A stretch of DNA of 64,000 nucleotides from Salpingoeca rosetta (Eukaryota; Protista; Choanoflagellata), in the NCBI GenBank assembly GCA_033442325.1, contig JAWQFM010000021.1:680939-744938 (forward strand), in the 5' to 3' direction. The notes beneath the pieces are model-generated. The model was not told the DNA's origin. It did no database searches and saw only the letters and a program-made list of their open reading frames with translations. The position numbers were made by a program, and so were the translations under genes. Shown piece after piece: positions 18,881 to 45,800 of the stretch; position 1 is the first letter of the stretch, and every line of letters begins with the position of its first letter.

Positions 18881-21800
18881 CCCTTACCGCGTCCGGTTTG
18901 CGCGGGAGGAGGACCTGCCTGGCCTGCTGCACCTGCAGGAGGTGTGCTGGCACCAGCCAGGCATGCGCGCCACGGCCCAAGACCTCCTCGGCCGTATCCG
19001 CCGCCATCCAGAGGGACAGCTTGTCCTCGAGGAAATGCTGCATGCAGGCAACAACTACGGGGGCGACGACGACGACGACGATGCTGACACTGGCACTGCT
19101 GCTGGTCGTGACACCTCTACAAACCAGGATGCTCAACAGCAACAGCAGCAGCAACAACAACATCATGAGCAACAGCGGTTCAGGCTGGTGGGCGCGGTTT
19201 ACTCCCAACGCATTGCAGGGGAGGACGCGCTGCTAAACGTGAGGTATGATCGCATCCACGACCTGCACGCGCCCGAGCACAGGCACGTGCAGCTGCTGGG
19301 GCTCAACGTGCTGCCGGAGATGCGCCACAAGGGATACGGCCGCACCCTGCTCAACTTCTTTCTCTACGTCACCAGCCTGGACCCCTTCACCAACAGCGTG
19401 TTTGGCGTCACCCGCTGTGGCGAGTACGCTCGCCACGCCCACCGCTACGAGTCGTGCCTGCACTACGTTGCTGCCACGCACGCGGAGTCTGGCCTGCCAA
19501 ACGACCCCATTCTGCGCTTCCACGTGTCCAACGGCGCGCAGATGCTGCGCGTGCTGCCAAACTACCGCCCAGCGGACACGGAGAACCACGGCCACGGCGT
19601 CCTCATCCGCTACGAGCTCAGGCGCAGGCTCGACTACCACCACCACCAGCACCAGCACCAGCAGCACCACGAACAGCCACAGCAGCGCAAAGGCGCAAGC
19701 ACTGCAAAGCACGGGTCATCGTCCTCCTCGTCGTCGTCAGCGTACCATAAGCTGCCGTCTGTGCCGCAGCTGGTGCAGGCCCTGCAGGAGCAGCAGCGCC
19801 AATTCCCGCAGCAACTCGAGGGCGCCCATGCCTTGCCTGCGCTCACCGCGGCTGCTGCAACAGCAAGAACACCAACATCAGCAGCAGCACCATCGTCGTC
19901 GGCAACAGCAACGTCGACAGGGGCGCAGCAGGCGGCAAGCGGGGAGGCTGCTGTGGCCACGAGCGAGGACGATGTGTTGCAGCAGATTCTCGACTGCGTG
20001 TGCGACCTGAAGGGGCTGGATGCCAGCGATGCTGACAGCGAAGGATATGCCACGGAGTCCTTCACGGCGCTCGGTCTTGATTCCATGGACCTGCTTGACT
20101 TGCAGCTGGTGCTCTCCACCCAGTTTGGCTGCGAGTTGCACCCGACTGCCTTTTTCCAGTTTCCAACACCCTCCGCGCTTGCCGCGCACGTGTTTGAGAC
20201 GTTTGTCTCCTCACAGCTCGAACAACAACAGCGACAACAACAACAGAAGCAGCAACAGCAACAGCAAGTAACCAGTGAAGCGAAGACAGCGCCCTCTTCT
20301 TCTTCTCCTTTGGCATCACCATCACCAGCACCATCACCATCAACAGCAACAGCAACAGCAACAAGCGGCGCCACCGCAGCACCACTGCAGCCATCACAGC
20401 CAATGTCAACGTCCAACACCGTGCCCACCACCTCCACGGTTGCGCCGACAGCTGCGACAGCAACTGGAGCCAATGCTCACTCGTCCAGCAATGCGGAGGT
20501 GGTGATCACGGGCATGGCGGGCCGTTTCCCGCAGTGCGCGTCCGCCCGTGAGTTCTGGATGCGCATTCTCGCTGGGGAGGACCTGGTGACGGCCGCGCCA
20601 ACAGGGCTGCGCCCGCGACACTCTGCTGCAGATGTCCAGCAGCATCAGCATCAGCATCAGCAGCAGCAACAGCAGCAGCCGGCCACACACGCCGGTGGGT
20701 ACTTGCAAGACGTTGTTGGCTTTGACCGCGCGTACTTTGGGCTGTCGGAGACGGAGAGTGCGCACATGGACCCGCAGCAGCGGCTGCTGTTGATGACGGT
20801 TGTGCATGCCCTTGAAGACGCCCTGCTGCCGCCAAGCATGCTCAAGGGCAAGCGCGTCGCCGTGTTTGTGGGCGCCTTCTCCCACGACTACGAGTGGATC
20901 TCACTCGCCCATCATCAACAGCAGCAGCACCACCACCAGCAGCAGCAACAACAGCAGCAGGAGCACCTGAGTACGTACTTCAGCACGGGTAACTCGTCCA
21001 GCGTGCTTGCTGGTCGCGTGGCGTACCAGTTTGACTTTCGTGGACCGGCCATCTGCGTGCACACGGCGTGTTCCTCCTCGCTTGTGGCTGCGCATCTTGC
21101 GCGCCATGCCCTGCTGCGCGGCGAGTGCGATGTTGCGCTCGTCTCTGGCGTCAACCTCATGCTGGCCGACGTCCTCTCGCAGGTGTTTGGCCAGGCAGGC
21201 ATGCTGTCGCCCCAGGCGCGCTGCCGCACCTTTGCCGAGGGTGCTGACGGGTATGTGCGCGCGGAGACGTGCGCCACCCTTGTGCTGCAGCGCACAGACA
21301 GCCCGCTGCTGCTTGCTTCGCCGTACGCATGCATCAAGGGCACGGCGCTGAACCAGGACGGCCGCACCAACGGCCTCACCGCGCCAAACCCCGATGCGCA
21401 GCGCGCCGTGATTGAGGACGCGCTTGCGGATGCGGGCCTGCGCGCTGACGCCATCTCCTATCTGGAGTGCCACGGCACGGGCACGTCGCTTGGGGACGCC
21501 ATTGAGGTACAGGGTCTTAACGCCGTGTTCAAGCTGCGCACGCGCCCGCTGCACATTGGCTCTGTCAAGACCAACACGGGCCACGCTGAGGCTGCCGCCG
21601 GTATGGTGTCGCTGTGCAAGGCGGCGATGGCCGTGCACGAGGGGCGCGTTCCACCCCACCTGCACTGCAGGAGGAAGAACTCGCTGCTGGCGCTGGACGT
21701 GGTGCCGCTCGTCATCACCGACGACGGCCTCGCCCTCTCCTCCGCTTCATCGTCTTCATCGTCGCAGCAAGCACATGCGGGTGGGGTGGCGGTGGGCATC

Positions 21801-24800
21801 AGCTGCTACGGCTACAGTGGCACCAACTCCCACGCCATCCTCACCAGCCGCGGGTGCGAGCGCATCTCCCGCCCGGCCTCGATTTCGGCCCTGCTGGCCA
21901 GTCGCGGCCTGCATCTCGACGCTGCCACGGCTGCGGCGGCGGTGCCCGCCCCACACGGCGCCTCGTCCATGCATCTCGTGGCCATGCCCGTGTCAGCGCA
22001 GAACACGGAGGCGTGCATGCAGGCAACGGCGGCCCTCGCTGCGTCTCTCGTGGATCCAGCACTTGCGAGCGCGTCACTGTCTGTGCTTGCCCTTGCCGCG
22101 TTGGTCGGACGTGAGCACGGACTGCCACGCCAGCTGCTGGTCATGTGCGATGCCGCGTCCCCGCGTCGCGCTGTTGCCAGCTCGCTCGCAGCGGCCGTGC
22201 ACGCGCTCCAACCGTTTGCCCTGCAGCCATCGCCAGAGCTGGCCGCGCTACTGCCGCCACCTGGCCGTGGCGGGGCGCACGGCGAGCACGCTGGCGGCGA
22301 TGCTGGTGGCAGCGTTGCGACATATGTGGTCGATGCCGCTCCAGCATGCCTCATGTTGCCCGTGCAGGCGGATCGCGTTGTCGTGGACCTGCCATCGTCG
22401 ACGCGCGCCATGAGCCTGGCCATGTGGCCTGCCCACTTGCAAGCGCCAGCGAGTGCCCTCAACCGCATCCATGTTCCTGCCGCGTTGGCCGCTGCCCACT
22501 TGCAGAACGCATATCGCCTGTGTCGCTTCCTTGCCACGGGCTTCAAACTCGCCAGCAGCGCCTCTGCGGCTGCTGTTGTTCCCACTGGTGGCTCAGGCAC
22601 ATCCGTTCAGCAACAACACAAGCAGAAGGGCCTTGTGGTGCGCGCACATGACGCATCGCACGTTGTGGCCTGCTTGCTTGCGCTCGGCGTCGTCTCCGAG
22701 GACCAGGCGAGCCAGGCCCTGCGTGACACAGCACCGGACGCTCTGTTGAAGCAGCTGTTTGGTTGGGCCAGGCAGCCAGGCCAAGCCGCATCGTATGAGG
22801 TTGTTGCCACCGCCAAGGGCGTGTCTTGCCTGACCTTGTCCACCAGCATGAGAGACAATGCGCCCTCTGCTGCCTCCACATCGTCGTCATCGCACCCGTA
22901 TTCAACTGCGCCTGCAGCATCGGGTGCGGCTTGTGATGTCACGCTGGTGTCACAGCATGTCGCCTTTGTGCTCAGTGCCACGAACCCTGTGCATTGGCAT
23001 GCGCTGGCCACGCGCTTCGCTGCTCTGGAACGTTCCCTGACCAATGCCATTGTTGCCTGTAACGCTGAATTGTGGACCAGCATGCAGGCTGTGCCGGCGT
23101 CGCTGCCGCGCCTGCCCCTCTACCCCTTTCAGCTGCTCCCGTCCTGGCTGCCAGATGACATGCCGCTCGCAGCCGTGCGCCTGAGCCCGGCCGTGTCTGG
23201 CCTGCCACGCAACCACGTCATCATGCAGCAGGAGCTGCTGCCTGGTGCCGCCCTCGTGTCCTCGCTGTTGACTGCGCTGCATGCGCTTGAGCTGTCGCCC
23301 ACACAGCGCGCCCACGCCACCACCGAGCTCACGGGGGTCACCCTCTCCCGCTCGGTCTCTGCCGCTGACGTGCCGCACACACGGGCCGTGCTGGGCGGCG
23401 ACGGCACATTCGCCGTCACTGTTGCTGCTGGCGGCACCCGTGCCTGCGAGGGCACGTGGCGCCTGGCCAGCCCGTGGTGCCGCACCACGTTGCAGTGGAA
23501 GCAAGCGGCGGCGGCCCTCGCCTCATCCACGCTGCAGCACGCCGTGTCGCCCGACGACTTTTATGCGAGTATGGCTGCTCGCAGCATGCACTATGCAGGA
23601 CCCCTGCGAGCGTTTGACGAGCGCATCACCTTCACCACCAGTGCGGGACCTACCGCTGCTGTGGCGCGTGGCCACATCTCCACCACCACCACCCAAGCAC
23701 GTGGTGACACCGACACCGCCTTGCTCATGGCGCAGGCGCTCGATGCCGGCATGCAGCTCTGCGTCGACCTGGCCGCCCGTGTTTTGGACGCCAACGGTGC
23801 CAGTAGCGGTGGTACCGGGCAGCACGGCAGTTCCTCCGTTTCGTCTGCATCGTCCGCGTCTTCGCAGCTCTCCTTCATGCCCGTGGCAATGGCGCGTGTG
23901 GTGATGCTGCTTGAGACGGCGTTTGCGCTGTCCACCAGCGGCCACGGCGCCAACAACGGCAGCAACGGTGGCCTGGAGGTGTACGCGGGTATTGATTTGC
24001 CGCAGCCGTCGGACCTCGACGCCTTGCAGCGAACGGGCCGCATCAAGGTGACTGCGTGGGTGTGTGCCGCAAACGCACAGGGCAGGCTTGTTCTCTCTGC
24101 CGAGGGCATCTCCCTGCAGGCGTTCCGCAACATGGGTGCAGCTGCACCCGTTGGCCCGACACCCGCTGTTGCTGTGTCGCATGCACAGCAGCAGCCTTTG
24201 GCGGGCCGAGCCGCCTCGAGCGACGCACGGCAAGCGTTTGCCCCTGGCACCGCAGCCCAGGGCGGCGGGGACGCAGCAAGCCACCCTGCCGCCTACCGCG
24301 ACGTCATCTTCCCTGTTGCGTTGCCGCTTCCCACACCAGCACCAGCACCAGTATCGCTTCCGCCATCCGCCGTGCTGCACATTTCCCTGGTCTCCACCTC
24401 GCCCCTGCCATATGATGATGAGGCCCTGCAGGCCGAGTTCCATGCCGCGCCGCTCAACATCTCCATTCCCGTGCAGCCGCCGGCGCCCATGGAGGATGAC
24501 GGCGCACACGACGCCCTGTTGCACATTGTCATGTCCGAGCTCTCCTCGGCCTCATCGCCCACTCCAGTGACCTCTCATCCCGCAGAAGGAGCAGCAGCGA
24601 CAACAGCAGCAGAACCAGCACAGCAGGCGTCAGCACAGGCACACGTGCCGGCGCCTGTGACGACTGTGCTGATTCACGTGGATCCTGTGCTGCTGGAGGC
24701 GAAGGAGGACGTGGTGGGTGCGAGCGATGCCATGCGCACGCGCGCTGCTGAGGTTTACTGGTCCCTCGTGCGCACCGTGCAGGTTGTGCTGGCTGCCCGC

Positions 24801-27800
24801 GCCCGCCACACGGACAGCCAGGCCATCTCCACCGTTGCCGTGTGCGTCCCACAACAGGGTCGGTTCTTTGAGGAAGTGTGGGCCGCGTGCAAGTCATTTG
24901 CGCGCGTGGTCTGGTCTGAGCGCCACTTTCGCCGCTCCTGCGCCATTGCTACCCTACCTGCTTCCCCAAACGCACCCGCCACCTCTCTCAACGACATCTA
25001 CGCCCTCCTGCAAGCGTCAGACACGGCGCCAGCATCAGCGGCCTCTTCGTCGCCATCAACAACCACATTTGATCCGCTGCTCGTGCTGCGAGCAACACGC
25101 CCTTCGCAAGAGCGCGGCAGCCAGCAACAGCAAAGCGAGTGGGTGCAGGAGCGGTTCGTGCCCGTGCGGGCGGAGGACGTGTCGCCGTCCTGGCCATGGC
25201 ACATCACGCAGCCCTCACAGTCGCACGCCTCGCTGGATGACCTGCAGCCCTCACCACTGAGCTGGGACGGCGACTGTCCCCCAGATGCCATTGTGGTGCA
25301 AGTCACAGCCGTTTCCCTCAACTTTCGCGACGTGCTCGGTGTTCTGGGCCTGTACCCTGGCCCACCAGCACCGCCTTGTCGCGACTTTGCGGGTGTCGTG
25401 CTGGCCATTGGCACAGGGGTCCTCGCTGCCAACAGCACCGCAGTCTCTGTCGGTGATCAGGTCTTTGGCACCCACCCGGGTTGCCTCGCTTCCCACATCC
25501 AAGTGCACCCATCGCAGCTGGCTCGCGTGCCGTCGACGACCGATGCCTGGTCTCCGCAGCGGTGCGCTGCAGCTGTCAGCGTCGAGATGACGGTGACCAT
25601 GGCGCTTGCTGATGGCGTCTCAGAGCGACTGCCGTCCGCCAAGGGTCTTGCCCTTGTCCATGCGGGCGCGGGCGGTGTCGGCCTCGCTGCTATCAGCCGC
25701 CTCACCAAGCTCGGGCTGCGCGTGTTTGCCACGGCGGGCTCCCAGCGCAAGCGAGACGTCCTGGTCAAGCTCCCGGGCGTCGTTGCCGTAAGTTCCTCCC
25801 GTGACTTTGCCGCCTTTGAGCGCGATGCCAGAGACGTCGTGCGCCAGCACGGCAGCGTCCACCTCGTCCTCAACAGCCTCTCTGGCCAGTTCACCTCCCT
25901 CTCGCTGCAGCTGCTGTCGCAGCAGGGAACTTTTGTGGAGCTGGGCAAGCGCAACATCATGACACCCGAGGAGGTGAGGGCAGTCCGCCCAGACGTCAAC
26001 TACAGAGTGCTGGCCGTGGACGCCGTCGTCGACAACGACATGCACGCGTGCCACGCTGCCATGGAAGAGCTTGCCGAGCAGATGCGCCGCGGTGTGGTTA
26101 CACCGCTCCCAACGACAGAGTTTCCCCTCGACACCACCGGCGTACGGGAGGCGTTCAAGTTCATGCGCAGGGCAGAGCACGTGGGGAAGATTGTGCTGTC
26201 TGCGGACCACGAGCGCGTGGCACCTCGGTCAAGCCGCGTGCGTGGCGGCGTGTACGTTGTGAGCGGGGGACTGGGTGCGCTTGGCTTGCAGACGGCGGCG
26301 TGGCTGCTGTGCCGCGGCGTGGAGCACGTGGTGCTGCTGTCGCGGTCTGGGCGCGTGGGGCACCCGGACCTGGTGCCGCTGTTTGATGCGCTGCCGACGC
26401 AGCAGCGGATGGACCGGCTGGGCGCGGCGCAGCGCGGGCTGGCGCGGGTGCACGTGCGGGTGTGCGACGTGAGCCGGGAAGAGGATGTGCGGGAGATGTA
26501 CCGGTGGTGTGTTGCCAAGCTTGGCGGAGTGGATGGGGTGTACCATGCTGCTGGTGTGACGTCTGACCGAGGGATTGAGAAGGTTGAGCGGGATGATGTG
26601 TGGCGCGTGTTTGGGGGCAAGGCTGGCGGGGCGTGGCACCTTGACCGGGTTGGGGAGGAGGTTGATGGGGTGGAGGTGGGTGAGTTTGTGGTGTACTCGA
26701 GTGCGTCGAGCGTGCTTGGGCTGCGTGGGCAGAGCGTGTATGCTGGTGCGAACGGGTATGCAGACGGGGTAGTGCGGCGGCGGCGCCGGGAGGGGAAACC
26801 GGCACTGAGCGTGCAGTGGGGCGCGTGGGCGTCCCACGGAATGGCGGCTGCGAATCTGGTCAAGAAAATGCAGGCCGTTGGCGCAGCCCCCATCACCCCT
26901 CCTCCCCCAATCGCATTTGCCATGCTGGATGCCCTGTTGGCCGCCAGCGAGGAAAGCCGAGGCGCCGTGTCCCTCGTCGTGTTTCCAGCCCACTGGACCA
27001 CGTACGCAAAAGCCTTGCCAGCACAGAGCCGCGGTCCGCTCGCCTCGCTTACCGGTGTCGTGCAACCACAGCAGTCGCCCGACGCTCTTGCTTCGTCACA
27101 GTCCTGGACACCCGAAGCGCTCCACGATGTGGTGGTGTCTTGTGTGAGGGATGTCTTGCCCCACACACCACAGCCGACTGATCCGCTCATGGACGCAGGG
27201 CTCGATAGCGTGTCGGTGATTGAGCTGCGGAACAGACTGGAGAGCGCCACTGGCTTGAGCCTGAGCGCCGGCCTCCTGTTCAGCTACCCGACCATTGACG
27301 CCATTGCCAAGCACCTGCAGACGCTGCTCATTCCAGCTGTGGATGCGCCTGTCGTCGCCCCTGCTGGCGCGGCTGAGCGGCGCGGGCTGGAGGCGGCGCT
27401 TGCCACAGCTGCCGTTGTTGGTGTTGCCTGCCGCTTCCCTGGCGCCGACTCTGCCCAGCAGTTTTGGCGCAATCTCAAGGCAGGTGTGGACTCGATTACG
27501 CCGCCACCGCGAACGCGACCGAAACTCAGCCGCGAATCGCAGGCCGGGTATGTCAGCGACGTCGGCTGGATGGACCCCAGCTTCTTTCAGCTGACCCTGG
27601 CAGAAGCGGCTCAGATGGACCCACAGCAGCGCATGGTGCTGGAGGTCGCGTACATGGCGCTGTGCAGTGCCGGCATTTCGCGTGACGCCGTGGCGGAGAA
27701 GCCAATCGGCGTGTTTGTTGGCATGTGCAGCTACGACTACACGGGCTTGCAGCTGCCAGCCACGCCTCTCACGGGCACAGGCCGTTCGCACGCCATCCTG

Positions 27801-30800
27801 GCCAACCGCGTGTCGTATGCGCTTGGGCTGACGGGCCCGAGTCTCACCGTGGACACGGCGTGCTCATCCTCGCTCGTGGCTGTCGACCTCGCCATGCAGA
27901 GCTTGCGCCAGGGCACCTGCACATACGCCATTGTTGCTGGTGTTAACGTCATTGCCAGTGACATCATGTTCAATGTTACGAAACGTGGGCATGTTGTCGA
28001 AGACGAACCGGTGCCGGACGTTTGACGCTGGTGCAGATGGATACGTGCGCGGCGAAGGGTGTGGTGCCATTGTGCTGACGCTTGAAGGCAATGCCACCAG
28101 CAGTGGCGCAGCGGCTGCGACAGGGGCCGGTGGCGCTGGGGCTGAGCAGCAGCAACAGCAACAGCAGCAGCAGCAGCAGCAGCAACAGCGGTTGCACACG
28201 CGCGAGCCGCTTGCGTACATCAAGGGCAGCGCTGTGAACCAGGACGGGCGGACAGCGAGCCTGACGGCGCCGAGCGGACTTGCGCAGCGCAAGGTGATGC
28301 GAGCGGCGCTTGCGGATGCAGGTGTGCGGGCTGAGGATGTTGTGTATGTGGAGGCGCACGGTACGGGGACGAGTCTCGGGGACCCGATTGAGGTTGAGGC
28401 TTTGCAGGATGTGTACTGTGGGCGCGGCAGCCAGGAGGGCGGCGACGTTGGTGGGCGACGTGAGCGGCTGTATGTTGGTGCCGTGAAGACGAACATTGGG
28501 CACCTTGAAGGGGCAGCTGGGATCGCTGGGCTGATCAAGGCGATTCTTGTTGTGCACCATGGGGAGGTAGTGCCGAACCTTCACATGGATGCGCTGAATC
28601 CGCACATTGGGCATGTTGGCGGGGAGGGCGAGGTGGTGTTTCCTCGGAAGGAGGGGGGTGTTGGTGTTGCTGGTACGGTAGAGAGCGGGCGACTGGGGCC
28701 ATCGTGCGTAGGCGGGGATGGGCGCGTGTATGCGGCTGTGAGCAGCTTTGGCTTTGGCGGCACAAACGCCCACGTTATCCTTGCACAAGCAACTCCGCCT
28801 GGCACCAGCACGGACGAGACTGCGGCATCTCGGGCCTTGCCATCGACATCACGTGAATTGACAGCAGCTACTGGTCCTTCCTCCCCCTCAGCAACAGCAA
28901 CTGCTGTGAAAGTCCTCAAGGGCGTGTGCTTCATGTTCTGTGGCCAGGGCTCACAGTACGCGGAGATGGGCAAATCGCTTTACGAGAACAACGTGGTCTA
29001 CCGTGAGTGCTTTGACAAGCTGTGTACTCTCTGTGTTGAAGAAAACCTGCTGCCCACACCGCTGTGGGACGTGGTGTTTGGCTCGAAGACAGACGTCATC
29101 AACCAAACCATGTACGCGCAGCCGACTCTGTATGCGCTTGAAGCCGCCATGTACTCGGCCATCGCCAGCAGCGGCGTTGTGCCGGAGTTTGTGCTTGGCC
29201 ACAGCCTCGGTGAGGTGGTGGCTGCATTTGCACTCGGAGTCCTCTCGCTCGAAGATGGCTTTCGCCTGGCATGCGCCCGTGGCACGCTCATGCAGCAGCT
29301 GCCGGAGGGCGGGACGATGGCAGCCATCTTCTCCGACATTGACTCGGTGCGCAGCACCATTGCTTCACTCTCGCTTGAGGACAAGGTCGCCATTGCTGCC
29401 GTGAACGGCCCGAAGCTTGTCGTTGTTTCCGGCGATAAGCAGGGCGTGCTGGCGGTGGGCGAGGCGGGCAAGACGCGGTTTGTTGAGTTGACCGTGTCAC
29501 ACGCGTTCCACTCGCACCTGATGGCCGGCATGATTGCTCCTTTCGAGAAGCGTCTCACGGCGGCGGATGGCGTGACATTCCGCCCTGCACACAAGCACAT
29601 GCGCATGGTGTCCACCGTGACTGGCGATGTGATTGAGGAAGAAGACCTGCACAGAGTGGATTACTGGACCACGCATGTCATGCGTCCTGTGCTGTTCTAC
29701 AAGGCGCTGCAGCAGGCGGCGGCCAACGGCGCCACCACCTTCATTGAGATGGGCTCTCAGGACATTCTTGTCGGCATGGCTCGCCGATGCAAGCTCAAGG
29801 GCATCACTCTGACCAACATCATCAACAAGAAGGCAACTGCCGACGCCCCAGCCACCCTGGACAAAGTCGTGTCCGACTTGTCAACGAGGGAGGGCGTAGT
29901 GATTGCTGAACGCAGCCAAGGTGCACAACAAGAACGGCAACAGAAGGAGGATGAGGAGGACCAGTTGCAGACTGCAACCTCGCCCTTGTTGTCTTTGCGA
30001 CCATCTGACGTATTTGAACGCCGAAGGGACATTCCCTTCACGCTTCCCACGGCCCCAGCTTCCTCGCTGCCATCCAAGCGAACACAGCACAGCGAGCAGC
30101 TTGATGTCAGCCAGCAGCCGCGTTGCCTCGTGCACGCGCATGTTGAGGAATCGCTTGTGGCAGCAGCCTTGCCGGAAGACCCAGCACACTGGACGGCAGC
30201 GCCCATTTCAGCTGCATTTGCAACTTCAACCGCCAAAGTGCCGTCGTGGCTCAAGACAACCACACCCACGAGCAAGCATGATGTGATTGACGTCGTGAGC
30301 CAGCTGGAGCACGCGCCGCAGCTGACGTTTGTGTTTGTGCTGGACGGCCTGAGCACGGCCGATGCGCTGGTGCAGCTGGCCACCTGGGGAGCGGCGGTGT
30401 GCGAAACCCTGTCCACAAGCACCACCAACATCACCATCGTGGTTGTTTCCTTCCTTGGCGAGAGCAGCGCAGAGGCGGGCGCAGCACAGCAGCTTGTGCC
30501 GTGGCATTTGGCGGGCGCGCTCAAAGCTGTGAGCGTGGAGCTTGGCGTCACTGCGCTGCGCCTGCTCGTGCTCTCGCCCTCTGCCCCGTGCATTCCCACA
30601 CTGCCCACGGACACACCACACCTGGTGTTTCTGCAGACCAAGGCAACGGCAGCGCCCAAGGGTGCGCAAGCAGTGCACGCCGTGCAGGAGCAGGTGTTTG
30701 CCGTGGACATACAGGAGTCCGAGACCAGCAAGGCCGAGGCGCATGGTGCTGCGCCATCTTCTCTTTCCAAAGATCAGGCAGCGCCGGGCACGGCTGTTGT

Positions 30801-33800: not shown

Positions 33801-36800
33801 AAATGCGCCATTGACGCTCGTGTCCACGTTCAAGTGGGTCGCCGTGGACCATGGAGACAACGACACCAGCACACTGGATGAGAGTGTACGGCACGTGTGT
33901 ATCGGCGCCTCAGACGCGTTTGCTGCGCTGCCCGAGGACAAGCACGTGCTGTCATGGTCACAGGTCGTCAACGTGAGTCACGATGAGGAAGCAGCACCTC
34001 CGCTGCTTGAAGCGGTGCTAGCTGACATGGATGATGCCGAAGACACCAGCGACAGGAAGCTGACAAGTATCGTGTTGCACCTCTCCTTCACCGACGTCAG
34101 CACAGACGACGCTGCTGCCTCTGCTGTCGCGTCTGCGCAACGTGCCCTTGCTGTGGTGAAGCAGATCTCGGCTGCGTCGCCATCATGCGATGTGCACGTG
34201 TGCTTGAGTGGATCTCAGGACACAGAGCATCTGTGGGCTCCAGCTATCGGCTTGTTCAAGACAGCCCAGCTGGAAATGCCCCGTCTCAGTGCTGGTGTGA
34301 TCGGACTGGAAGAGCCGAGCAGCGATGCGGTCGCAGCTGCCTACGCGCATTTGTGCACCACAAGGGCAACCCTGCTTTGCACACCAAGCGGCGTTCAAGA
34401 GCTGCAGGCGGCAACGTCTGAGCGCCACGTCGAGGCAACCAACGAGGAGGCAAGCGCTTCTACTCCTGCGCCTGAAGAGCACGTATGCATCATTGCTGGT
34501 GGCGCGGGAAAACTCGGAAAGATCGTGTGCGAACGTTTGGCAAGCCAAGGCTTCAAGGTAGTGGCGCTCAGCAGGCGAAAGCCCAGTTCTGACGAGGCGA
34601 AGCAAAGCGTCGTGTCTGTCGTGTTTGAGCAGTGTGACATCACCAAGAGGGCAGACGTGGACAGTGTCCTGCAAAAGTATGCTGCAACCGGCAAGCAACT
34701 GAGCATCTACCAGTGTGCGGGGAGCTACCATGTTGGTCTGCTGAGTGGGAGCGAGTGGGCGGATGCGGAGGCGGTGCTGGCGCCCAAGATCCAGGGCACG
34801 ATGAACCTGCACTGGGCGTCGCTGGAGCACAGCGTGTCGCAGTTTGTGCTGTTCTCGTCTGCGTCGTCTGTGTTTGGGTCTGTGGGGCAGGCGTTCTATG
34901 CGTCTGGCAACAGCTTTCTGGACCGGTTCCACAGCTGGCGCGTGCGGCAGGGGCTGCCGTGCACGTGCGTGAACTGGGGTCCGTGGGGCGGGTTGTACCC
35001 GGGGCACGTTGAGAAGCGATGGGCGGTTGAAGGGTATGCGCCGCTCGGGCAGGAGGAAGGGCTTTCCGTGCTTGAGGGGCTTGTGCAGGCTGATGCGAGC
35101 GACGCCGGGAGCACGGTTGTTGCGCGTGTGCTGCCTGAGGAGTTTCTCCGGGCGATGCAGGCGCCACTGCGCAGCACGGAGCTGGGCAGCGTGCGGGAGA
35201 TGCTTGAGAAGGAGGTTGCTGCGCGTCGGGAGGCGCTGGCTCGCATGGGCGGCGGCAGTGGCGGCGGCGGCGGTCGTGGCTGGCGTGGCGCTGGCTCACA
35301 TGCGGCGGGCACGGGCGGACGGCTCGGGGAAGCGCACAAGGCCGTTGTGACGCGGCAGGAGGTGCGCGATGGCGTGATTGGCGTGCTTGCGCAGGAGCTT
35401 GGTGGGGACGCGAAGGACATCCGTGCTGCGGCGAAGGCGAACACGCCGTTCTCTGAGCTTGGGCTGGAGTCGTTTCTTGCGATGGAGATTCGGTCGCAGC
35501 TGCAGTCGCGGTTTGCGGTTGACCTGTCTGCGACGGTGTGCTACGACTACCCGACGGTGGACAAGCTTGCTGAGCACGTGTGCAAGCTGGTTGGCGCTGT
35601 GAGCAGCGACATGGCTGGCGAGGGCGAGGTGGTGGTGAGCACGAAGACGGGGCGGCGGCTTGCGGCTGAGGCCGGGCTGGCTGGCGCGATGGCTGAGCGC
35701 AGCGGTGGAAGCGGCAGCTTTTGCTGTCGTCGTGCTGTCTGTGTGTCTGCCTGGCGGGGTGTGTGACGAGGAGGTGCTGTGGGGGGCGTTGTGTGGCGGG
35801 GAGGATCTGGTTGAGGTTGTGCCTGGGGAGCGGTGGGATGTTGATGCGTACTATGATGCTGACGGGCACGCTGAGGGGCGGATGTGGAGCCGGCGGGGCG
35901 GGTTCCTGCGCGGGATTGACGAGTTTGATGCTGAGTTTTTTGGCATCACGGGCCGTGAGGCGAGCAGCATGGACCCGCAGCAGCGGCTGCTGCTTGAGAC
36001 GAGCTGGCACGCGCTTGAGAGCGCTGGGCTTGGCGGGAAGCGGCTTGGGCGTGGGCGTGCTGGGGTGTTTGTTGGTGTTTCTGGGAGCGAGTTTGCGACG
36101 CTGTGCGGGCGGGTGTCTGGTGCGAGCGCGGTTGGGGATGTGCATGCAGCGACGGGGACGGCGAGCAGCGTTGTAGCTGGGCGCGTGTCGTATGCGCTTG
36201 GGCTTGGCGGGCCGAGCGTTGCCGTGGACACTGCATGTTCGTCGTCGCTTGTTGCTGTGCATCTTGGATGCCAGTCGCTGCGCAGTGGCGAGAGCGATGT
36301 TGTGCTTGCGGGCGGCGTGAACATTGTGCTGCTGCCTGACGGCAACATCCACTTGACGAAGACGCGAATGCTGTCGAAGCAAGGGCAGTGCCGGGCGTTT
36401 GATGCGAGCGCGGACGGGTATGTGCGGTCTGAAGGGTGTGGCGTTGTTGTGCTGAAGCGGCTGGAGGACGCGGTGCGCGACGGCGACCCGATCCGGGCCG
36501 TGATCCGGGGCAGCGCGATGAACCAGGACGGGCGGTCGTCTGGGCTGACTGCGCCGAATGGCCCCGCGCAGACGGCAGTGATTGAGGCTGCGCTGCGCAG
36601 TGCGGGCGTTGCGGCTGGGGATGTTGAGATGCTTGAGGCGCACGGGACGGGGACACCGCTTGGGGATCCGATGGAGATGCAGGCGGCGATTGCGGCGCTG
36701 CGCAAGGGCGAGAGTGCGTGTGGGCGCGTGCTGCATGTTGGGTCGATCAAGTCGAACATTGGGCATGCGGAGGCGGCGGCTGGTGTTGCGGGCCTGATCA

Positions 36801-39800
36801 AGGCGATCCTGAGTGTTGAGCGTGGTGTGATTCCGCGGCACGTGCACTTTGAGGAGCTGAATCCTGCGATTGGGGAGCTACCGCCGAGCGTGCGTGTTGC
36901 GACGGAGACGACGGAATGGCAGAGCGAAGAGCGCGTTGCTGGTGTGAGCTCGTTTGGCTTCAGCGGCACCAACTGTCACATGGTTGTTCAGAACTACTCT
37001 CGCCCTGACACGACTGGCGCTGAGATTGACTGTTTTGATGATCAGGTCTCGTCCTTGCTCTTCTTCTCCGCTCACACCAAGGTTGCGTTGATCGAACAAA
37101 TTGGCACCTTCGTCCAAAGGCTTGACCGCGAATCGGCATCTACATTCACTCGTGCCGCTCGAACCACACACGCCCGTGCTCGGTTGGACCTCTCTGTCCA
37201 GTTCGTGTTTACGTCCCTTGCAGACGCACAAGTTGGGCTTCGGTCCTGGCTGCAGTCGGCTCGATCGATCGACCACCTGGACCAGCCGCTTCTGCTTGAC
37301 TTTGGTGATGTCCACTCCCGTTCTGAATCTCTGCTGTTGGCACTTCCGATGTCATCTGCATCGCCCCTGGCGAGCATGGTTGAGAGTGCGCGTGAACTCT
37401 GCCCTGGTGCGGATGAGCAACCGCTTGTCGAAGACCTGTGCTTGACGCGTCTCATCGCAGAGCAAGGCCTTGCGGTTTCAGTGGTGAACCACCCGCAGGC
37501 AGATTTGCTGAATGCCTGCACGCAATCATCTGTCACGCTGGAGTCGCTTCTACTGCAAATTTCCACCGCAGCTGAGGCTCCACATTCACCTGATGCCACT
37601 GTTGGCACTTCCTTTTCTGCTGACGCACTGCTGAAGATGCTGTCTTTCCATGGCCAGGTGACAGGCACGGATTGCACTGCGACCGCGCAACTGGCGGGCT
37701 TGTCCACCGACACTCCTCGCAAGGCAAGCGATTGGGTTCACCTCCCCGCGTACCCATTTCAGCACCAGCGGTACTGGATCCACAGTGACAAACCTGTGCA
37801 CATTGGATTGGTTGATGACCGCTTGGTTCTGTCGGAGGTGCCGGGTCTGAAGGACGACACCGTCGCCACAACAGTGACTGCGGAGGATGAGAAGACCAAG
37901 GTCACGGAGCTGTCGGACGTTGCTGCGGAATGGCTCATCATGGATTCGACAAACGCCTGCGATGCACAAGCGCTTGCGCTGCCTGCTGAACGGGTGATCG
38001 TCGCTGACGACCATGTGCTTGACAGCGCATGGGACTTTGATGGTGCCCGGACCATTGCCTTGGCGTGCTCCACGGTTGAGAAAGCCGAGCAACTGGTGTT
38101 CTCCGTGCTGCATGATGTCTCATTGGGCCCAGGTCCATCACCAGCGATGACCGTGCTGTACTGTGCTCAACCTGTGTCCATGTGGACGCCGATTCGCAGC
38201 ATGGTGCAGACCGCACGCTTGGAGCTCGGGCTCACCATCCGCGAACTTGCACTGGATGCAGACGAAGTACCAGGCAAGCTTAGGCCCCTTGCCACACTTG
38301 AATCCGGCCTTTCAGCGATGACACCCACCTTGGCGTGGCCACGTATGCCTGGGTGGCTGTCCGTGCCGCGCACGGCGCTCATCACGGGCGGATCTGGAAG
38401 CCTCGGCCTTCAGACGGCGTGGGTTCTGGCTGAGGAAGGGTTTGCGCGCGTGGTGCTGATGGGGCGTCGATCCACGAAAGCCCTGTCCCCTGAAACGCGG
38501 GACGCAATGGAGCACATGCAGTTGCGCTTTGGCACGAAGGTCTCGTACGTGTCACTTGATTTCACTGCAAGTGATTCAGAGATGCAGGATGCAATGCGGA
38601 GTCTTGCAAGCGTGTTGGGCGATGCACGCACCATTGATTGCATTGTGCATGCTGCAGGCATCAACAAGGACAAGCCCTTCTCCAGCCTGACATGGGATGA
38701 TGTGACTGCTGTTCGCTCAAGCAAGGGCAAGGCCCTTGACGTCCTGTTGCGCCAGCTGGCCACGGCTGACATCGCTGTGGGCATGGCCCTGTTGTATTCG
38801 TCAATCAGCGCTGTGTTTGGCGCGCGCGGGCAAGCGAACTACAGCCTGGCCAATGGAGAGCTCATTGCCCAGGCAGCGTCTCTCACTGCCGCTGGAACCC
38901 CCGCGTGTGCCATCTGCTGGGGACCCTGTGCCAACTCGGCCATGGTGGACAGCTTGACAGCTGCCCACATCGCACGCATGCGAGCGCATGGTGTTGACCT
39001 GCTGTCTGTCAGCGAATTTCGCACGGCCCTGCGCCAGGCGCTGGCAACGGTGGCAACATGCGGCGAGGCCACCAAACCCACTGCACTTGTGGCCTATGCC
39101 AAATGCGATGGTGATGCGCAGGCAGAGGAGACACCAACAAAGGCACAGCAGGAGTCTGCCAGAGCTGAAGCGTGGAACGAAGAGGATCTTGTCACGGAAA
39201 TGTCCGACATTGCCCGCACAGTGTTGTGTTTGCGAGGTGAGGTTGGAGATCCGGATGAAACGACCTTTGGAGACTTGGGCGTGGACTCGCTGCTGGCGGT
39301 TGACATCCAGAAGGAGGTGCAGGAGCGCTTTGGCGTAGCCGTCACAGCGACGTTTGTGTATGATTACCCAACGCTGCGCGAAGCAGCAAGGCACGTGCGG
39401 TCGCTGCTGTCATCTGTCACTCCCGCTGTCAGTGGCGACATGTCACTGGTGCCGTTCCGACACAGCCAGGAGATTGCGGTTGTTGGCGTTGGGCTGCGGT
39501 TTGCCGGATGCGACGACGAGGCGTCGTTCTGGCGCATGCTGGAGGGCGGGGCGTGCACGGTGTCGACGCTGGCATCGCACGCCGGGCAGCGCACGTGGCA
39601 GCTGCAGCGGCCCATCAGCCAGGGCGGCGTGCTGTCGGACGTGAAGAGCTTTGACGCTGCGCTGTTCAACATCTCCAACCGGGAAGCCGTGAGCATGGAC
39701 CCGCAGCAGCGGATCATGCTTGAGACTTACTACCGCGCGCTGGAGAGTGCTGGGATGAACGCTTGAGCAGGCGCGCGCGGTGCGGACGGGGGTGAGGATT

Positions 39801-42800
39801 GGGTCTGTGAGAACGAGTACCACAAGGTGCTTGAGCATGAGCGTGCAGCGGGGACGCTATGAGGCGCAGGCTGGGCACATGATCACGGGGAACCCGAGCA
39901 GTGTGCTTGCTGGGCGCGTGTGCGTATGCGCTTGGGCTCAAGGGTCCGAGCGTTCTTTGTGGACACTGCATGTTCGACGTCGCTTGTTGCTGTGCATCTT
40001 GGATGCCAGTCGCTGCGCAGTGGCGAGAGCGATGTTGTGCTTGCGGGCGGCGTGAACATTGTGCTGCTGCCTGACGGCAACATCCACTTGACGAAGACGC
40101 GAATGCTGTCGAAGCAAGGGCAGTGCCGGGCGTTTGATGCGAGCGCGGACGGGTATGTGCGGTCTGAAGGGTGTGGCGTTGTTGTGCTGAAGCGGCTGGA
40201 GGACGCGGTGCGCGACTGCGACCCGATCCGGGCCGTGATCCGGGGCAGCGCGATGAACCAGGACGGGCGGTCGTCTGGGCTGACTGCGCCGAATGGCCCC
40301 GCGCAGACGGCAGTGATTGAGGCTGCGCTGCGCAGTGCGGGCGTTGCGGCTGGGGATGTTGAGATGCTTGAGGCGCACGGGACGGGGACGCCGCTTGGGG
40401 ATCCGATGGAGATGCAGGCGGCGATTGCGGCGCTGCGCAAGGGCGAGAGTGCGTGTGGGCGCGTGCTGCATGTAGGGTCGATCAAGTCGAACATTGGGCA
40501 TGCGGAGGCGGCGGCTGGTGTTGCGGGCCTGATCAAGGCGATCCTGAGTGTTGAGCGTGGTGTGATTCCGCGGCACGTGCACTTTGAGGAGCTGAATCCT
40601 GCGATTGGGGAGCTACCGCCGAGCGTGCGTGTTGCGACGGAGACGACGGAGTGGCAGAACCCTGAGGCTGATGATGGTGCACCTTTGCTTCTCGCTGATG
40701 GCTCTGGAGCTCGTTTGCTTGGTCACCGCATCGCTGGTGTAAGCTCGTTTGGCTTCAGCGGCACCAACTGCCACGTTGTGGTTCAGAATACGCATTTGCT
40801 CGACACCGAGTCCCTTGCTGCGCCACCGCCGATTCCCCTCGTGTTCTGCTTTGGCAGCCCCTCAGCCGCACACACCTCTCATCGCCTGCGCCAGTGCATG
40901 GCCGGCCTCTCGTCGTCGGACAACGCTGTTGACTTGTTGGGCCTGTGGCTATTTCTCGCTGACAACACCTCCGACTTTGCGCCTGAGGTCGTGATTGTTG
41001 CTCGCACGCGCCAGGACTTCTTGACGGCTGCGTCGACCATCCTCAGCTCGAGCGATGATGCGGAAACCAAGCTTGCCGTGCGCGTGAGCCACGAGGATGA
41101 GCTGCTGCAGCAAGGCGTGTCACCCTTTGACGTGTTTGACGTCTCTGGCCTGGACGACTGGAAACGCGTGCTTCCCTGGATTGAAACCACAGCGGACGCT
41201 GCGACGGTTGCAGAATTGGCATCCGCATTGCCGCTCTCGGAGTTCCTTGGCCGCGTGCTCATCCCACACCTGCAGTCTGAGGTGTCGGACGAGTCCTCCA
41301 CATCGCCGACGGCGCTGCACGACGTGAACCGTCGCGTGTTGGCACCGGTAGTGCAAGAGCTGCTGCATCTTGGCGGCACGGGCGCGACCCTGGCTGACAT
41401 TCGCCGCACCTCCAGCTACAGCAAATGGACGACGCAGTTCATGTCCAAGCGATACTGGCTCACGCCTGGTCCAGGCCTGACGCCAGAGTGTGCTGCGATG
41501 GATACGATGCACACGCTGGAATGGACGACCACGCCGCTTCCGCTTGAACCTCGCGTCACCGCCCGCCGGGAGCGCGCACCCAAGGGGGTGGTGCTGCTTG
41601 ACCTGTTTGGTGCTGCCGACGATGCCCTGCGAAGCGAGTTGCCCCATCGCGTGGATGTGCTTTGCAAGGACGGCACTGCGTGCTCTGTGAGCAAATGCAG
41701 CCTGGCTAGCGCCAAGGGCAGCACAACAGCGACGTTGACGACGTCGTTCGATCTGGCGCCGGCCGACGTGACGCCTCAGCGCGTGTTCGCCCTGCTTTCT
41801 CCTCGGTCCCTTGGCTGGACTGCGGTGCAAGCTGCGGTGGTGTGCGTGCCACAGCTTACCGCGACCGTCAGCATGGCGGCGGTCGTGCAACAACTGTACC
41901 CGTGGCTGCTCAAGTGCATCCAGGAGGGAGTGCGCCTGCGTGTGCTGGTGCCGGAGACGCTTGGCTCGTCAGCCAGCTCTGGCCGTGCTGTTCGCAAGTG
42001 GCAGGCGCTGACCGCGGCTGTTCGCACCGCCTGTCTTGAGCAGCAAACTGTGGATCACGCTGTGGTGTTTGTTGGGGCTGGCGTTGCGCAGCGTGACCTG
42101 GCCAGCGTGCTTCTCGCTGTGGACGACCTGCCACCCGTGACGGGCTTGGTTGCCAGCACTTCCCCGAACAAGGGCATGGATGCGGTATACTTGGAGCCGC
42201 GCGCTGTTCCCCTGTCCCAGAGCAGTGCCTTGACGCAGGGCAGGCTTGTGCCCTCGGCGCACGCGACTGCGCCAGGTGTCGCAACTGGTGACGTGGCTGA
42301 GGTCGTGCTTGTGACGGGTGGCTCTGGTGCACTGGCACAGGTGGCGCGGGACACGCTGGCGCAGCAGTGCTCGTTGTTGGTGCTGCTGACGCGTGCGGAG
42401 TGTGCTGCCGCACAACCGCTGCCACGCGGCTATCTCCGTGGGCATGTGGTGTCGATGACGTGCGACATCACGGACCCGCGCAGCGTCAGGCTCTTGCTTG
42501 TTCGCTTGGGCAGCCTGGTGAAGAAGACACAACCGCAGCGGCGGATTCGGGTGACGAGCGTCGTCCACACGGCTGGGTGCACGCGCGATGCCCCCATCCG
42601 CCACCAGACGCCGGACCTGTTTGAGGAGGTGATGCAGCCGAAAGTGGCTGGTCTGCGCATCCTGCTGCAGGAGCTGTTTTCGTGCGGGCACAGGTGTGAG
42701 AGCGTGCTACTCTTCTCGTCTTCCAGTGCCGTGCTGGGCAGCCCGGGCCAGCTCAACTATGCCGTTGCCAATGCGCTGGCAGACGCAACTGCACGCGAGC

Positions 42801-45800
42801 TTGTGCCCAACACGCACACGATCCACTTTGGGCCTTGGGACCCTGCCGTCGGTGGCATGACGGCGCAGCTGTCGTTGGCCAACAGGGTGCGCATCGAGAG
42901 CCATGGCATGGGCTTCATCACGGAGGCGCAGGGCAAGCTGGCGCTCGCCAGCCTGTGGGCGACATGTCGCCCCGGCCGTGCTGACGAGTTTGCGGAGCAG
43001 GTCACCTGGCAGGAGGTTGCGTGCATTGCGCTTGCCCAGACATCACCTCTCACGCCCAGCGCAGGTGCTGCTGACACGCAAAGGCCAGCAGCGGCCACCT
43101 CTCACGCCGCAGTTGCAACAGGGGCGCACCCAGCAGCCGGTGGCGGCCCGTCAGATGTACGAGAGCTTGTTGCTCGGCTGCTCGGCATGGATGTTTGGGA
43201 CTTGGATGACAAGTCGCCGCTGCTCGCGTTTGGTCTTGATTCGCTGGTGGCGGTGGAGCTCCAGGGACAGCTGCAGCGGCTGTTTGGCGTCACGCTGTCC
43301 TCTGACGAGCTGCTGAGCCCGAGCTGCTCCGTCTCGTTCCTCGCTCGGGAACAGGCCGTCGCAGCAGCCCGCAAGCAGCAAGAGGCGGAGGCGGAGGCGT
43401 GGGCAAGCGAGGCAACAGCCACAGCACCCACACCAGCGCAAAGCGGCGGCATTGTGGGGTTTGTCCCACCAACGCCCACCGCCGCTGCTGCCGCCGCCAG
43501 TGGAGGTGGACTGGAGGCGGCAGACTTTGGCGTGCTGGAGTTGCTTCGCAGCCTTCCTCTAGCGCCCGCGCTGCTGTCAGACATTGACTCGCTGTTGTCC
43601 AAGCTGCGTGGGCCCACAGCCATCCCTGCTGGTCCCCTGAGCGGTGGCGGGCGCGCGGCAACCCCAACGGCCGTGCAGCTGCTGGACCGGTACGGTGCAC
43701 GGTTTGGGCGGGGGCGATCCGGGTCGCGAACACCAACACCGCAGCCGCGCACGGCCTCCCCTGCATTCAGGCCGCCACAGCTGGCGTCCAGGCTGCACCA
43801 CGTTCAGCAGCAACAGCAGCAGCTGCAGCTGCTGCAGCAGCAGGGTCAGTACCACCCATCCACATCTGATGCGGGTTCGGAAGCTGCTGTTCGCAGGCCT
43901 GGTGGTGTGCTGACAGAGCTGTCACTGAACCAGCGTGCCATGTGGTATCTGTGGAAGACCCTCCCCCAGGCAGATGCGTACAACATCTGCTACGTTGCGC
44001 GTGCGCGGCAGAAGCTGGACGTTGCTCGCTTGGAGCAGAGCCTTGCCGCTGTCGTGGACCACCACGCTTGCCTGCGACAGGTGTTTGATGAGGAGACGGG
44101 AGATCCGAGCACGCTGACGGTTGCCGATGCCCTCCGCTTCACGACCCGACCCATTCCAGGCGTGGGCCACGACCAAGATGTGGCAGCAACAACAACTGCA
44201 GCTTCGACAGCAGAAGAAACGCCGGAGCAGGCAGTGCTGCGTGCCGTGGCCCAAGTCCTGCGGCAGCAATGGTCGCTCTCTGAGGGCCCTGTTGTGGACT
44301 GCATGGTGTTTGCAAATGCCACGGAGCAGTACGTGGCCTTGTTTGTGCACCACATCTCTGCCGACTTTGTTGCGCTGCACACACTTGCGGAGGAGTGGAT
44401 GGCGCTGTACGCTGGCCGCTCTGCGCTGCCATCCGGTGCGGTGGAGCCGACATACAAGGACTTCATTGCCTGGCAGGCGCAACAGCAGGTGGCCCTGCGC
44501 GATGCCGCCCTCTCCTACTACGAGGCGGAGCTGAGCCGCCTGCCGGCAGACCGGTCCCAGTTGCCGCCCGAGCTGCGTGCGGGCGACGAGGACAGCGGTG
44601 ACGTTGACGGTGGCGGTGGCGCTGATCACGGCCACTCCGTGCAGTTCACCCTGCCACGCACGGAAGGGGATGCCCTGCTTGCCACCAGCAGGCAGCAGCA
44701 CGTGACGGTGTTTGCGCTGCTGTTGTCGCTGTATCAGCTCGTGCTGTCGCACGCGGCCAGCGAGCGTGAGCTGTGCGTGCTGTGCCCGACCGCGGGTCGC
44801 CCCGCCGAGTTTCGGCAGGTGGTGGGGCACTTCATCAACACGGTGCCCGTGCACACAACGGTGGACATGTCACGCACGCTTGCCCAGCACGTGCAAGCGG
44901 TGTTTGCAGGTGTGCAGCGCGCCATGCGCTTCCAGCACTTTTTCTTCTCCAACGTGGTGCGTGCCATGCCCCATGTGCGGCGGGCAGGTGCCAGTCAGCC
45001 CATCAGCGACGTGGCCCTCAACTTCTTTGACACCGGCGGCCTGCGCAGTCACGGCGTGCGTGGCGACAGTGGTGCGAGTGGGACGAGTGGTGCGAGTAGT
45101 GCGCTGGAAGCCTTGACTGTGGCCCAGCAGATGACTGCGTTCGCGCTGATGCTTCATGTGGTTCGCAAGGGTGACGGCGAGTGGCACGTTGAGCTGCGCT
45201 CCCGAAAGAGCACCGCGGCAGCCCGTGAGTGCCTGGCGCGTATGTCGTGGCAGCTGGAGACGGTGATGCGGCGACTCGCAGCAAACCGCGAAGGCGTGCT
45301 TGCAGGCAACATTGGGCACACCATGGTGCAGGCGGACGTGCTGAGCCTGTATCGCTTCCAGCCACAGCACGAGCACCAGCTGCTGCATGAGCTGTCGCGG
45401 CAAGGCCTGGAGCGCGGCGCATGTTCGCTGTCGGACCTGGCCGTCGCCGACGAGGACGGCGAGCTCACGGTTGCCGAGTACCTGTGGCTGGCCAACCGCG
45501 TGCATGCGTGGCTGACGGACAAGGGCCTGCCCAAGGGCACCCCCGTGGGGCTGGACATGCCCAAGTGCCGGTATCAGCTGGCTGCGGCCGTGGGTGTGCT
45601 GCAGGCTGGCTGTGCGTTTGTGCCGTTCTCGGGAACGTGGCCGGATGAGCGCACGGCGCTGGTGCGAGACAAGTGCGAGCTGCGGGTTGTGCTGTCGATT
45701 CGCGGCGCCGGTGCCCCCGCTCTGCAAGGACTGGAGCGCATCGAGCTTGACGCGTTGCACGAGGACCTCCGGACGCAGCTCGGCGCTGCGAAGGGCACGA

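Follow-up and report, generated by a model that had tools for sequence, protein, structure and literature searches.

How does a modular polyketide synthase (PKS) with five extension modules and a single acyltransferase (AT) charge all of its carrier proteins? This question is raised by a locus of the choanoflagellate Salpingoeca rosetta, contained in a stretch of 64,000 nucleotides (G000:C21:680939-744938, in a genome of 55.4 Mb and 68 contigs) that was analyzed at full length and is referred to here as the window. A hybrid of a PKS and a nonribosomal peptide synthetase (NRPS) is encoded on its plus strand. We find that this synthase adds a new example to a known design, and that its one distinctive feature is the loss of the linker domain from its integrated AT. 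We favor loading in trans within a sparse-AT, cis-AT-like assembly line, with the AT of module 2 (AT2) as the most likely donor, and give this reading about an even chance on the sequence evidence.

Four long open stretches jointly encode the enzyme (Table 1). Pfam families follow one another in the order of a loader, modules 1 to 5 and a terminal NRPS module of condensation, adenylation and peptidyl carrier protein domains (C-A-PCP). The loader is composed of AprA_N, a winged helix, an MT2-like methyltransferase, a GNAT domain and an acyl carrier protein (ACP). Module 1 consists of a ketosynthase (KS1), approximately 440 amino acids (aa) without any family, a weak dehydratase (DH), an enoylreductase (ER), a ketoreductase (KR) and an ACP; module 2 of KS2, AT, KR and ACP; and modules 3, 4 and 5 each of a KS, a stretch without a Pfam family, a KR and an ACP. 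The Cys, His and His motifs were found in all five KS domains by motif scan, in agreement with an earlier interpretation made from the nucleotides alone (the sequence-only reading), and the phosphopantetheine Ser is kept in all ACPs.

AT2 is the only place in the window to which PF00698 matches. Its motifs GQGSQ (nt 28942), GHSLG (nt 29197) and HAFH (nt 29500) occur once each, and Pfam, NCBIfam and motif scans all bear out the previous assignment of the three to module 2 only. The fabD model aligns to AT2 from end to end, and among solved relatives of AT2 the malonyl AT of CurL scores best (206 bits, versus approximately 100 bits for FabD and 91 bits for the trans-AT DisD). A six-frame scan of the whole genome found no other AT on this contig.

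Post-KS regions were sized as the distance between the KS end (GTN) and the post-AT motif, and profiles of the KS-AT linker domain (LD) and the post-AT linker were built from 35 cis-AT homologues, with E-values given per sequence. The distance from GTN to GQGSQ in module 2 is 60 aa; across 109 homologue modules it is never below 92 aa and has a median of 121 aa. Spacing and alignment place the deficit at about 60-70 LD residues ahead of AT2, and neither linker profile has a significant match in module 2. The post-AT linker is degenerate, and AT2 is flanked by low-complexity tethers. Thus mounted, the sole AT-bearing module is without the KS-AT scaffold, and three of the AT-less modules (1, 3 and 4) retain it.

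The AT-less modules were examined by the same measures. In module 1, 431 aa separate GTN from LPLYPFQ, versus a median of 453 (5-95% range, 440-476) for the corresponding distance in 39 cis-AT homologues. The region had been described as AT-sized and motif-less, which holds on both counts. The stretch contains no GxSxG, has no AT match with Pfam at E<=1 and no match to the PDB by phmmer, and aligns to a 41-sequence AT profile with an hhalign E-value of 0.27. Position-specific scoring matrix alignments, semi-global and global, were compared with shuffles and gave z of about -0.5 (global), as against at least 38 for AT2. A full HMMER search of 1.84 billion representative proteins returned 0 matches at E<=1e-3. 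ESM features placed AT clusters in all ten top positions (0.88), which lies below the reliability line of the tool and serves as a lead only, and a single-sequence AlphaFold2 (AF2) model was uninformative, with a predicted local distance difference test score (pLDDT) of 37. AT homology of the stretch was in this way sought by eight approaches, all of which were negative or uninformative.

In modules 3, 4 and 5, the distance from GTN to the post-AT motif is 197, 259 and 229 aa, respectively. Among homologues from a word search, measured with the profiles, 94 AT-bearing modules have a median of 449 aa, 44 AT-less modules span 106-209 aa and 16 intermediate modules span 290-386 aa. All three distances are therefore far below those of AT-bearing modules; modules 4 and 5 exceed the range of the AT-less modules of relatives, in which only the LD is present, and module 3 falls inside it. 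The LD profile matches module 3 (13.4 bits, E 3e-6) and module 4 (12.9 bits, E 5e-6) more strongly than module 1. The post-AT profile matches module 4 (30.1 bits, E 2e-11), module 1 (7.1 bits, E 2e-4) and, marginally, module 3 (3.3 bits, E 4e-3). Neither profile is significant in module 5, where only SKRYW is seen. These results reproduce the pattern of post-AT-type linkers in modules 1, 3 and 4 and a degenerate form in module 5 that had been read from the sequence. The further description of modules 3-5 as short remnants stands for shortness; remnant status follows from position and size, and no homology to ATs was detected.

An AF2 model from KS4 through the post-AT linker, computed from a 32-row alignment, has a mean pLDDT of 81, with the KS above 90. 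It contains a confident beta-alpha-alpha-beta-alpha LD at residues 455-525, a helical spacer of low confidence (pLDDT 37-70) and a confident post-AT linker (~80). The best matches in a fold search with this model are KS-AT didomains (CurL, DEBS and MAS), followed by trans-AT KS domains with flanking subdomains. Profile searches and structure prediction of the post-KS regions, a check that had been proposed with the sequence-only reading, found no AT in modules 1 and 3-5 and an LD/post-AT frame in modules 1, 3 and 4. The spacers of modules 3-5 resemble their relatives solely in the LD and post-AT parts. They are mutually unrelated, yet KS3, KS4 and KS5 share nearly identical DNA.

If the window holds one AT, the donor for the other modules could lie elsewhere in the genome. 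No free-standing AT is present in the 64-kb window, flanks included, as had been claimed, and the synthase is without the linked AT gene of trans-AT systems. The six-frame scan of the 55.4-Mb genome found no other PKS-type AT; a FabD/MCAT gene and a dead AT homologue, both on contig C4, were the only further members of the family. The latter is a stand-alone open reading frame of 725 aa (C4:724810-726987, at C4:726136, minus strand) with an AT domain like the malonyl/acetyltransferase of animal fatty acid synthase (FAS), the motifs GLGSE and GHGVGD, and a long, low-complexity acidic tail. It was rejected as a trans-acting AT because the nucleophile Ser is replaced by Gly. A cytosolic type I FAS as a donor was likewise rejected, since none was found in six-frame KS and AT scans of the genome, and a published study (PMC10764717) agrees with the absence of an animal-type FAS.

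The same genome encodes a second PKS on contig C5 (C5:2067204-2049160, minus strand) in a single open frame of 6015 codons, with four KS, a DH, two KR and several ACPs. It contains no AT, and the LD and post-AT profiles are not significant. Each KS leads nearly straight into the next domain (the DH begins after ~70-100 aa), and the last ~1070 aa are without a Pfam family.

Four of the five modules and the GNAT-type loader are without an AT, yet the ACP serines and the KS Cys-His-His triads are kept, and acylation in trans is therefore required if the enzyme works. To that extent the trans loading that was originally suggested is supported. We propose a multimodular PKS-NRPS with cis-AT-like KS and AT domains, in which one working, malonyl-specific AT would reside in module 2. 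Modules 1, 3 and 4 retain the frame of a KS-AT didomain, LD and post-AT linker, with orphan sequence of ~300, ~85 and ~150 aa in the AT slot, and module 5 is without recognizable linkers as well. If the enzyme is active, malonyl would be delivered in trans to six carriers, ACP1-5 and the loader ACP. The likeliest donor would be AT2, as the sole intact PKS-type AT in the genome, hung on low-complexity tethers and not on a rigid linker. The layout is probably an inherited one, likely acquired along with the gene from bacteria by transfer, and would not represent decay under way. A bolder version, in which AT2, having lost the rigid LD that anchors ATs in all relatives examined, would rove on disordered tethers to malonylate all six of its own carriers and also those of the AT-free C5 PKS, with the empty LD/post-AT scaffolds kept as docking sites, is conceivable but doubtful.

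Table 1. Positions of the PKS-NRPS gene and its domains in the window.
Feature	Position (nt)	Strand	Basis
PKS-NRPS open stretch, frame 2	16905-28022	+	
PKS-NRPS open stretch, frame 0	27832-35763	+	
PKS-NRPS open stretch, frame 1	35639-39763	+	
PKS-NRPS open stretch, frame 1	39863-47419	+	
AprA/CurA-type loader and loading ACP (GLDSM), without own AT	16905-20192	+	Pfam; ACP Ser
KS1: Cys (VHTACSSS), His (ECHGTGT), His (KTNTGH); poly-Q/H insertions	20496-21830	+	Pfam, motifs
Module 1 LD, weak	21933-22169	+	LD profile 6.2 bits, E 5.5e-4
Module 1 orphan stretch, ~300 aa, AT-sized, without AT motifs	22170-23072	+	Spacing, null searches
Module 1 post-AT linker (LPLYPFQ)	23073-23153	+	Post-AT profile 7.1 bits, E 2.4e-4
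DH (weak), ER, KR and ACP1 of module 1	23154-27317	+	Pfam; ACP Ser
KS2, one-base frame shift near 27985	27417-28773	+	Motifs, frame analysis
Short Ser/Thr/Ala/Pro-rich tether in place of structured KS-AT linker	28774-28929	+	Spacing, alignment, LD profile
AT2, sole intact AT, malonyl type	28930-29850	+	PF00698 E 5e-38; fabD model 172 bits
Low-complexity tether, degenerate post-AT linker (PSDVFERRR), KR2 and ACP2	29851-31857	+	Pfam, profiles, ACP Ser
KS3 (Cys-His-His)	31927-33165	+	Pfam, motifs
Module 3: LD (33211-33396), orphan spacer ~85 aa, post-AT linker (LPPLPLNQQEYW)	33211-33780	+	LD/post-AT profiles
KR3 and ACP3 (GLESF)	34486-35640	+	Pfam, ACP Ser
KS4 (Cys-His-His)	35711-36976	+	Pfam, motifs; AF2 pLDDT above 90
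Module 4: LD (37043-37264), orphan spacer ~150 aa, post-AT linker (LPAYPFQHQRYW)	37043-37786	+	LD/post-AT profiles, AF2
KR4 and ACP4	38372-39397	+	Pfam, ACP Ser
KS5, mosaic of KS3 and KS4	39467-40771	+	Sequence comparison
Module 5 post-KS spacer	40772-41460	+	Spacing; profiles null
KR5 and ACP5	42305-43315	+	Pfam, ACP Ser
Terminal NRPS module C-A-PCP (context)	43916-47419	+	Pfam

The relatives of the KS domains bear on where this layout comes from. Most of the sequences retrieved by a word search with module 4 were bacterial cis-AT PKSs, ~50% identical over the KS, and KS4 scores 439 bits against the cis-AT KS of CurL versus 300-336 bits against trans-AT KS domains. A tree of 178 KS domains, the top matches of one query, was constructed using FastTree, leaving out KS5 and those homologue KS domains whose downstream sequence was too short for AT scoring. 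KS1, KS2 and the four KS of the C5 PKS form one group (SH-like support 95), and KS3 and KS4 stand beside a mostly AT-less set (P0044, P0091, P0082, P0075 and P0042; support 79). The layout in that neighboring set is a KS, an LD, 165-240 aa with either no AT signal or an AT scrap of 8-14 bits, and a post-AT linker. This intermediate kind accounts for about 16 of the 155 modules in the homologue set.

One of these neighbors, P0075, lies on the contig CALRWS020000001.1 of a bacterial metagenome-assembled genome (MAG), in a cluster at ~160-206 kb (L017, L018 and L021-L023). The title of the record names a Chitinophaga pinensis MAG, a label that may not fit the 65% GC of the contig, as the GC content of Chitinophaga is presumably nearer 45%. 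The cluster begins with AprA_N, a winged helix, an MT2-like domain, GNAT, ACP, KS, LD, AT, DH, KR and ACP, and continues with nine further KS, one of them with an intact AT, for a total of ten KS and two intact ATs. The other modules have an LD, AT scraps of 0-14 bits and a post-AT linker. It shares with the window gene an AprA-type loader (35% identity over 588 aa between the two), many KS with few ATs, and the same kind of spacer. The two differ in the position of the first intact AT (module 1 of the MAG cluster, module 2 of the window gene), in that both intact MAG ATs keep the LD whereas AT2 does not, and in module order, which is not colinear. Upstream of the MAG cluster are a Trp-halogenase-like gene and a thioesterase. 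Because the same layout is found in bacterial kin, the design is shared and was probably inherited. Lines with few ATs and with AT-shaped gaps recur within this KS family and are not peculiar to the eukaryote.

Several points weigh against the reading that we favor. The loading of ACPs beyond ACP2 by AT2 is something that we infer, and the descent of the spacers from ATs, which position and size suggest, goes beyond what sequence can demonstrate. In the tree, which is drawn from the top matches of one query, AT-bearing and AT-less modules are interspersed (22 label changes); membership of a cis-AT lineage is to be taken as a statement of similarity and not as settled phylogeny. Elsewhere, the MAG genome has free-standing ATs, including a tandem AT-AT, and the empty modules of its cluster may therefore be served by discrete ATs and not by embedded ones. 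Lastly, KS2 and KS5 are out of frame as assembled, and so a full-length enzyme may not be made.

The fourth of these points, discrete ATs in bacterial kin of the same layout, leads to a hybrid of cis and trans loading, in which AT2 would serve module 2 alone and an unlinked AT would load the loader ACP and ACP1, 3, 4 and 5. The only genomic candidate is the FabD/MCAT gene (C4:~1411400-1413266, in the stretch C4:1411385-1413812, minus strand), which was the outcome of the search for free-standing FabD-like ATs that had been suggested as a check, together with the Ser-to-Gly homologue. The gene is intact, with the motifs GQGAQ, GLSLGE and SGAFHT, and the AT-free C5 PKS needs a donor in trans in any case. 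In bacterial systems, modules with a null AT can be complemented by FabD. However, an open, Arg/Ser-rich and acid-poor extension of ~120 aa precedes the first strand of the encoded enzyme, which is typical of a mitochondrial presequence and as expected of a mitochondrial enzyme. The mitochondrial-type form is the only one found, and the gene is multi-exon, of a housekeeping type and unlinked to both PKSs. We regard this hybrid arrangement as unlikely. The exons of the MCAT gene are short, and the sequence between them consists largely of CA/TG-type dinucleotide repeats (translated as CVCV or HTHT).

The frame breaks raise a different alternative, that the gene is a recently inactivated relic, in which the KS2 and KS5 lesions are real, the assembly line has ceased to be produced and the lack of ATs belongs to a general decay. 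KS2 contains a 1-nt shift near nt 27985 (frame 2 to frame 0; 27980-27990), between the active-site Cys and the GMLS segment. KS5, compared with KS3 at 39763-39950, contains five 1-nt indels and ~8 substitutions within 230 nt, with two in-frame TGA codons just upstream of the active-site Cys; its remainder is ~100% identical to KS3 or KS4, and the lesion cluster adjoins the point at which it switches from KS3-like to KS4-like. In addition, the ACP3-KS4 linker changes from frame 0 to frame 1 at 35580-35700, which could reflect an intron of 67-118 nt or a 1-nt indel. Introns were rejected as the source of the KS2 and KS5 breaks, as every frame-keeping GT/GC-AG pair removes conserved KS core, and no second copy was found in the genome. 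Consensus error within repeats could account for the KS5 cluster, as could mutagenic repair at a gene-conversion boundary, and the breaks in KS2 and KS5 may be either assembly errors or true decay. On the other side, the gene has open frames of 3706, 2644, 1375 and 2519 codons in DNA of 61-66% GC, whereas the off-frames close every 100-330 codons, and all catalytic motifs checked are intact. The KS5 lesions occur at a switch within near-identical repeats, a typical site of consensus error. AT-free modules are also present in intact bacterial kin, so that the absence of ATs needs no decay. A relic is, in our judgment, improbable.

That a cis-AT line is losing its ATs within this lineage, in graded and ongoing steps that would make it a true intermediate, as the sequence-only reading had it, is the least supported alternative and very unlikely. 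In its favor, the spacers are graded (~300, ~150 and ~85 aa), the linkers of module 5 are lost, and KS and AT are cis-AT-like. Against it, no AT similarity is left in any spacer, which makes any loss an old one; bacterial relatives, among them those nearest to KS3 and KS4, display the same graded states; and the spacers of modules 3-5 are mutually unrelated despite nearly identical KS domains.

If AT2 does serve all modules, as the favored reading of trans loading would have it, the synthase would be a clean natural test, for PKS engineering, of whether one integrated AT can feed a whole line and of what tethering this needs. Its assets as a test case are the single AT, the lack of a discrete AT and a second, AT-free synthase in the same cell; the host is genetically manipulable. 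With this gene, the range of sparse-AT PKSs in eukaryotes reaches beyond algae to an organism reported to be closely related to animals. The gene also connects these PKSs with bacterial clusters that have AT-shaped gaps and the same loader, and so bears on how eukaryotes acquired modular PKSs.

Other features of the locus concern its residence in the host genome. A RIC1 gene in the left flank places the locus in a eukaryotic context. The GC content of the PKS-NRPS gene is 61-66%, versus 48-58% in the flanks, and the gene has at most a few interruptions over 30 kb. Poly-Gln/His runs occur inside conserved KS domains (KS1 at 20630-20700 and 20950-21010; KS2 at ~28100-28180), and the AT2 tethers and the C5 PKS display similar low-complexity expansion. 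Such expansions suggest long residence in a eukaryotic genome. The GC skew within the gene (16000-48000) is negative at ~16-26 kb and positive at ~26-48 kb; GC-skewed repeats (GRINS) have been reported for choanoflagellate PKSs (PMC8256042). An open reading frame with a YbaK/ProX-type tRNA_edit domain (15363-16115, minus strand, E 5e-25) is divergent from the start of the PKS.

The synthase can be placed among known systems by what it has in common with each. A cis-AT PKS has an AT in every module, and here one in five extension modules has its own; the cis-AT-type KS with KS-AT and post-AT linkers is nevertheless found, as CurL is the best match of both KS4 and AT2 and the linker profiles match modules 1, 3 and 4. 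Lack of an integrated AT, the mark of trans-AT PKSs, holds for modules 1, 3, 4 and 5 and does not hold for module 2. The closest structural likeness on that side is to trans-AT PKSs with a KS flanking subdomain (PksJ KS2, 4NA1; MgsF KS, 4ZDN; OzmH KS7, 4OPE; fold match E ~1e-53), which are AT-less and have an LD-like subdomain after the KS and a linker back to it. Unlike these, the window synthase has no adjacent discrete AT gene and one AT in cis, its spacers exceed those of most AT-less modules of relatives by 50-150 aa, and its KS domains score higher against cis-AT KS than against trans-AT KS. Kirromycin and enacyloxin are made by hybrid cis/trans-AT lines with AT-bearing and AT-less modules and dedicated discrete ATs in the cluster, whereas the cluster in the window is without such ATs.

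In eukaryotes, the nearest counterparts have been described in algae. A single N-terminal 'semi-trans-AT', presumed to load every module, is reported for all haptophyte type I PKSs and for one PKS from Breviolum (O'Neill 2020, PMC7073580). AT displacement has been proposed as a main route by which algal PKSs evolve, in a study that also noted one possible multimodular enzyme with a single AT (Shelest et al. 2015, PMC4661987). No paper was found that joins Salpingoeca rosetta and trans-AT synthases; choanoflagellate assembly-line PKSs are mentioned in passing for their GC-skewed repeats (PMC8256042, PMC10394414), and the choanoflagellate PKS papers examined are without this architecture. The idea of a novel cis-to-trans intermediate is not supported, as the layout is shared by bacteria and already named in algae (PMC7073580, PMC4661987). 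The window gene differs from the algal enzymes in its host, an opisthokont protist, and in its AT, which is not N-terminal (PMC7073580) but lies in module 2, ~12 kb into the gene, and is without a linker domain. Its empty modules keep KS-AT and post-AT linkers around an orphan filler, of which the algal papers describe no counterpart. What it shares with the algal single-AT enzymes is the class itself: a eukaryotic, multimodular type I PKS in which one integrated AT is found with several KS modules, and for which loading of all modules by that AT is presumed in the algae.

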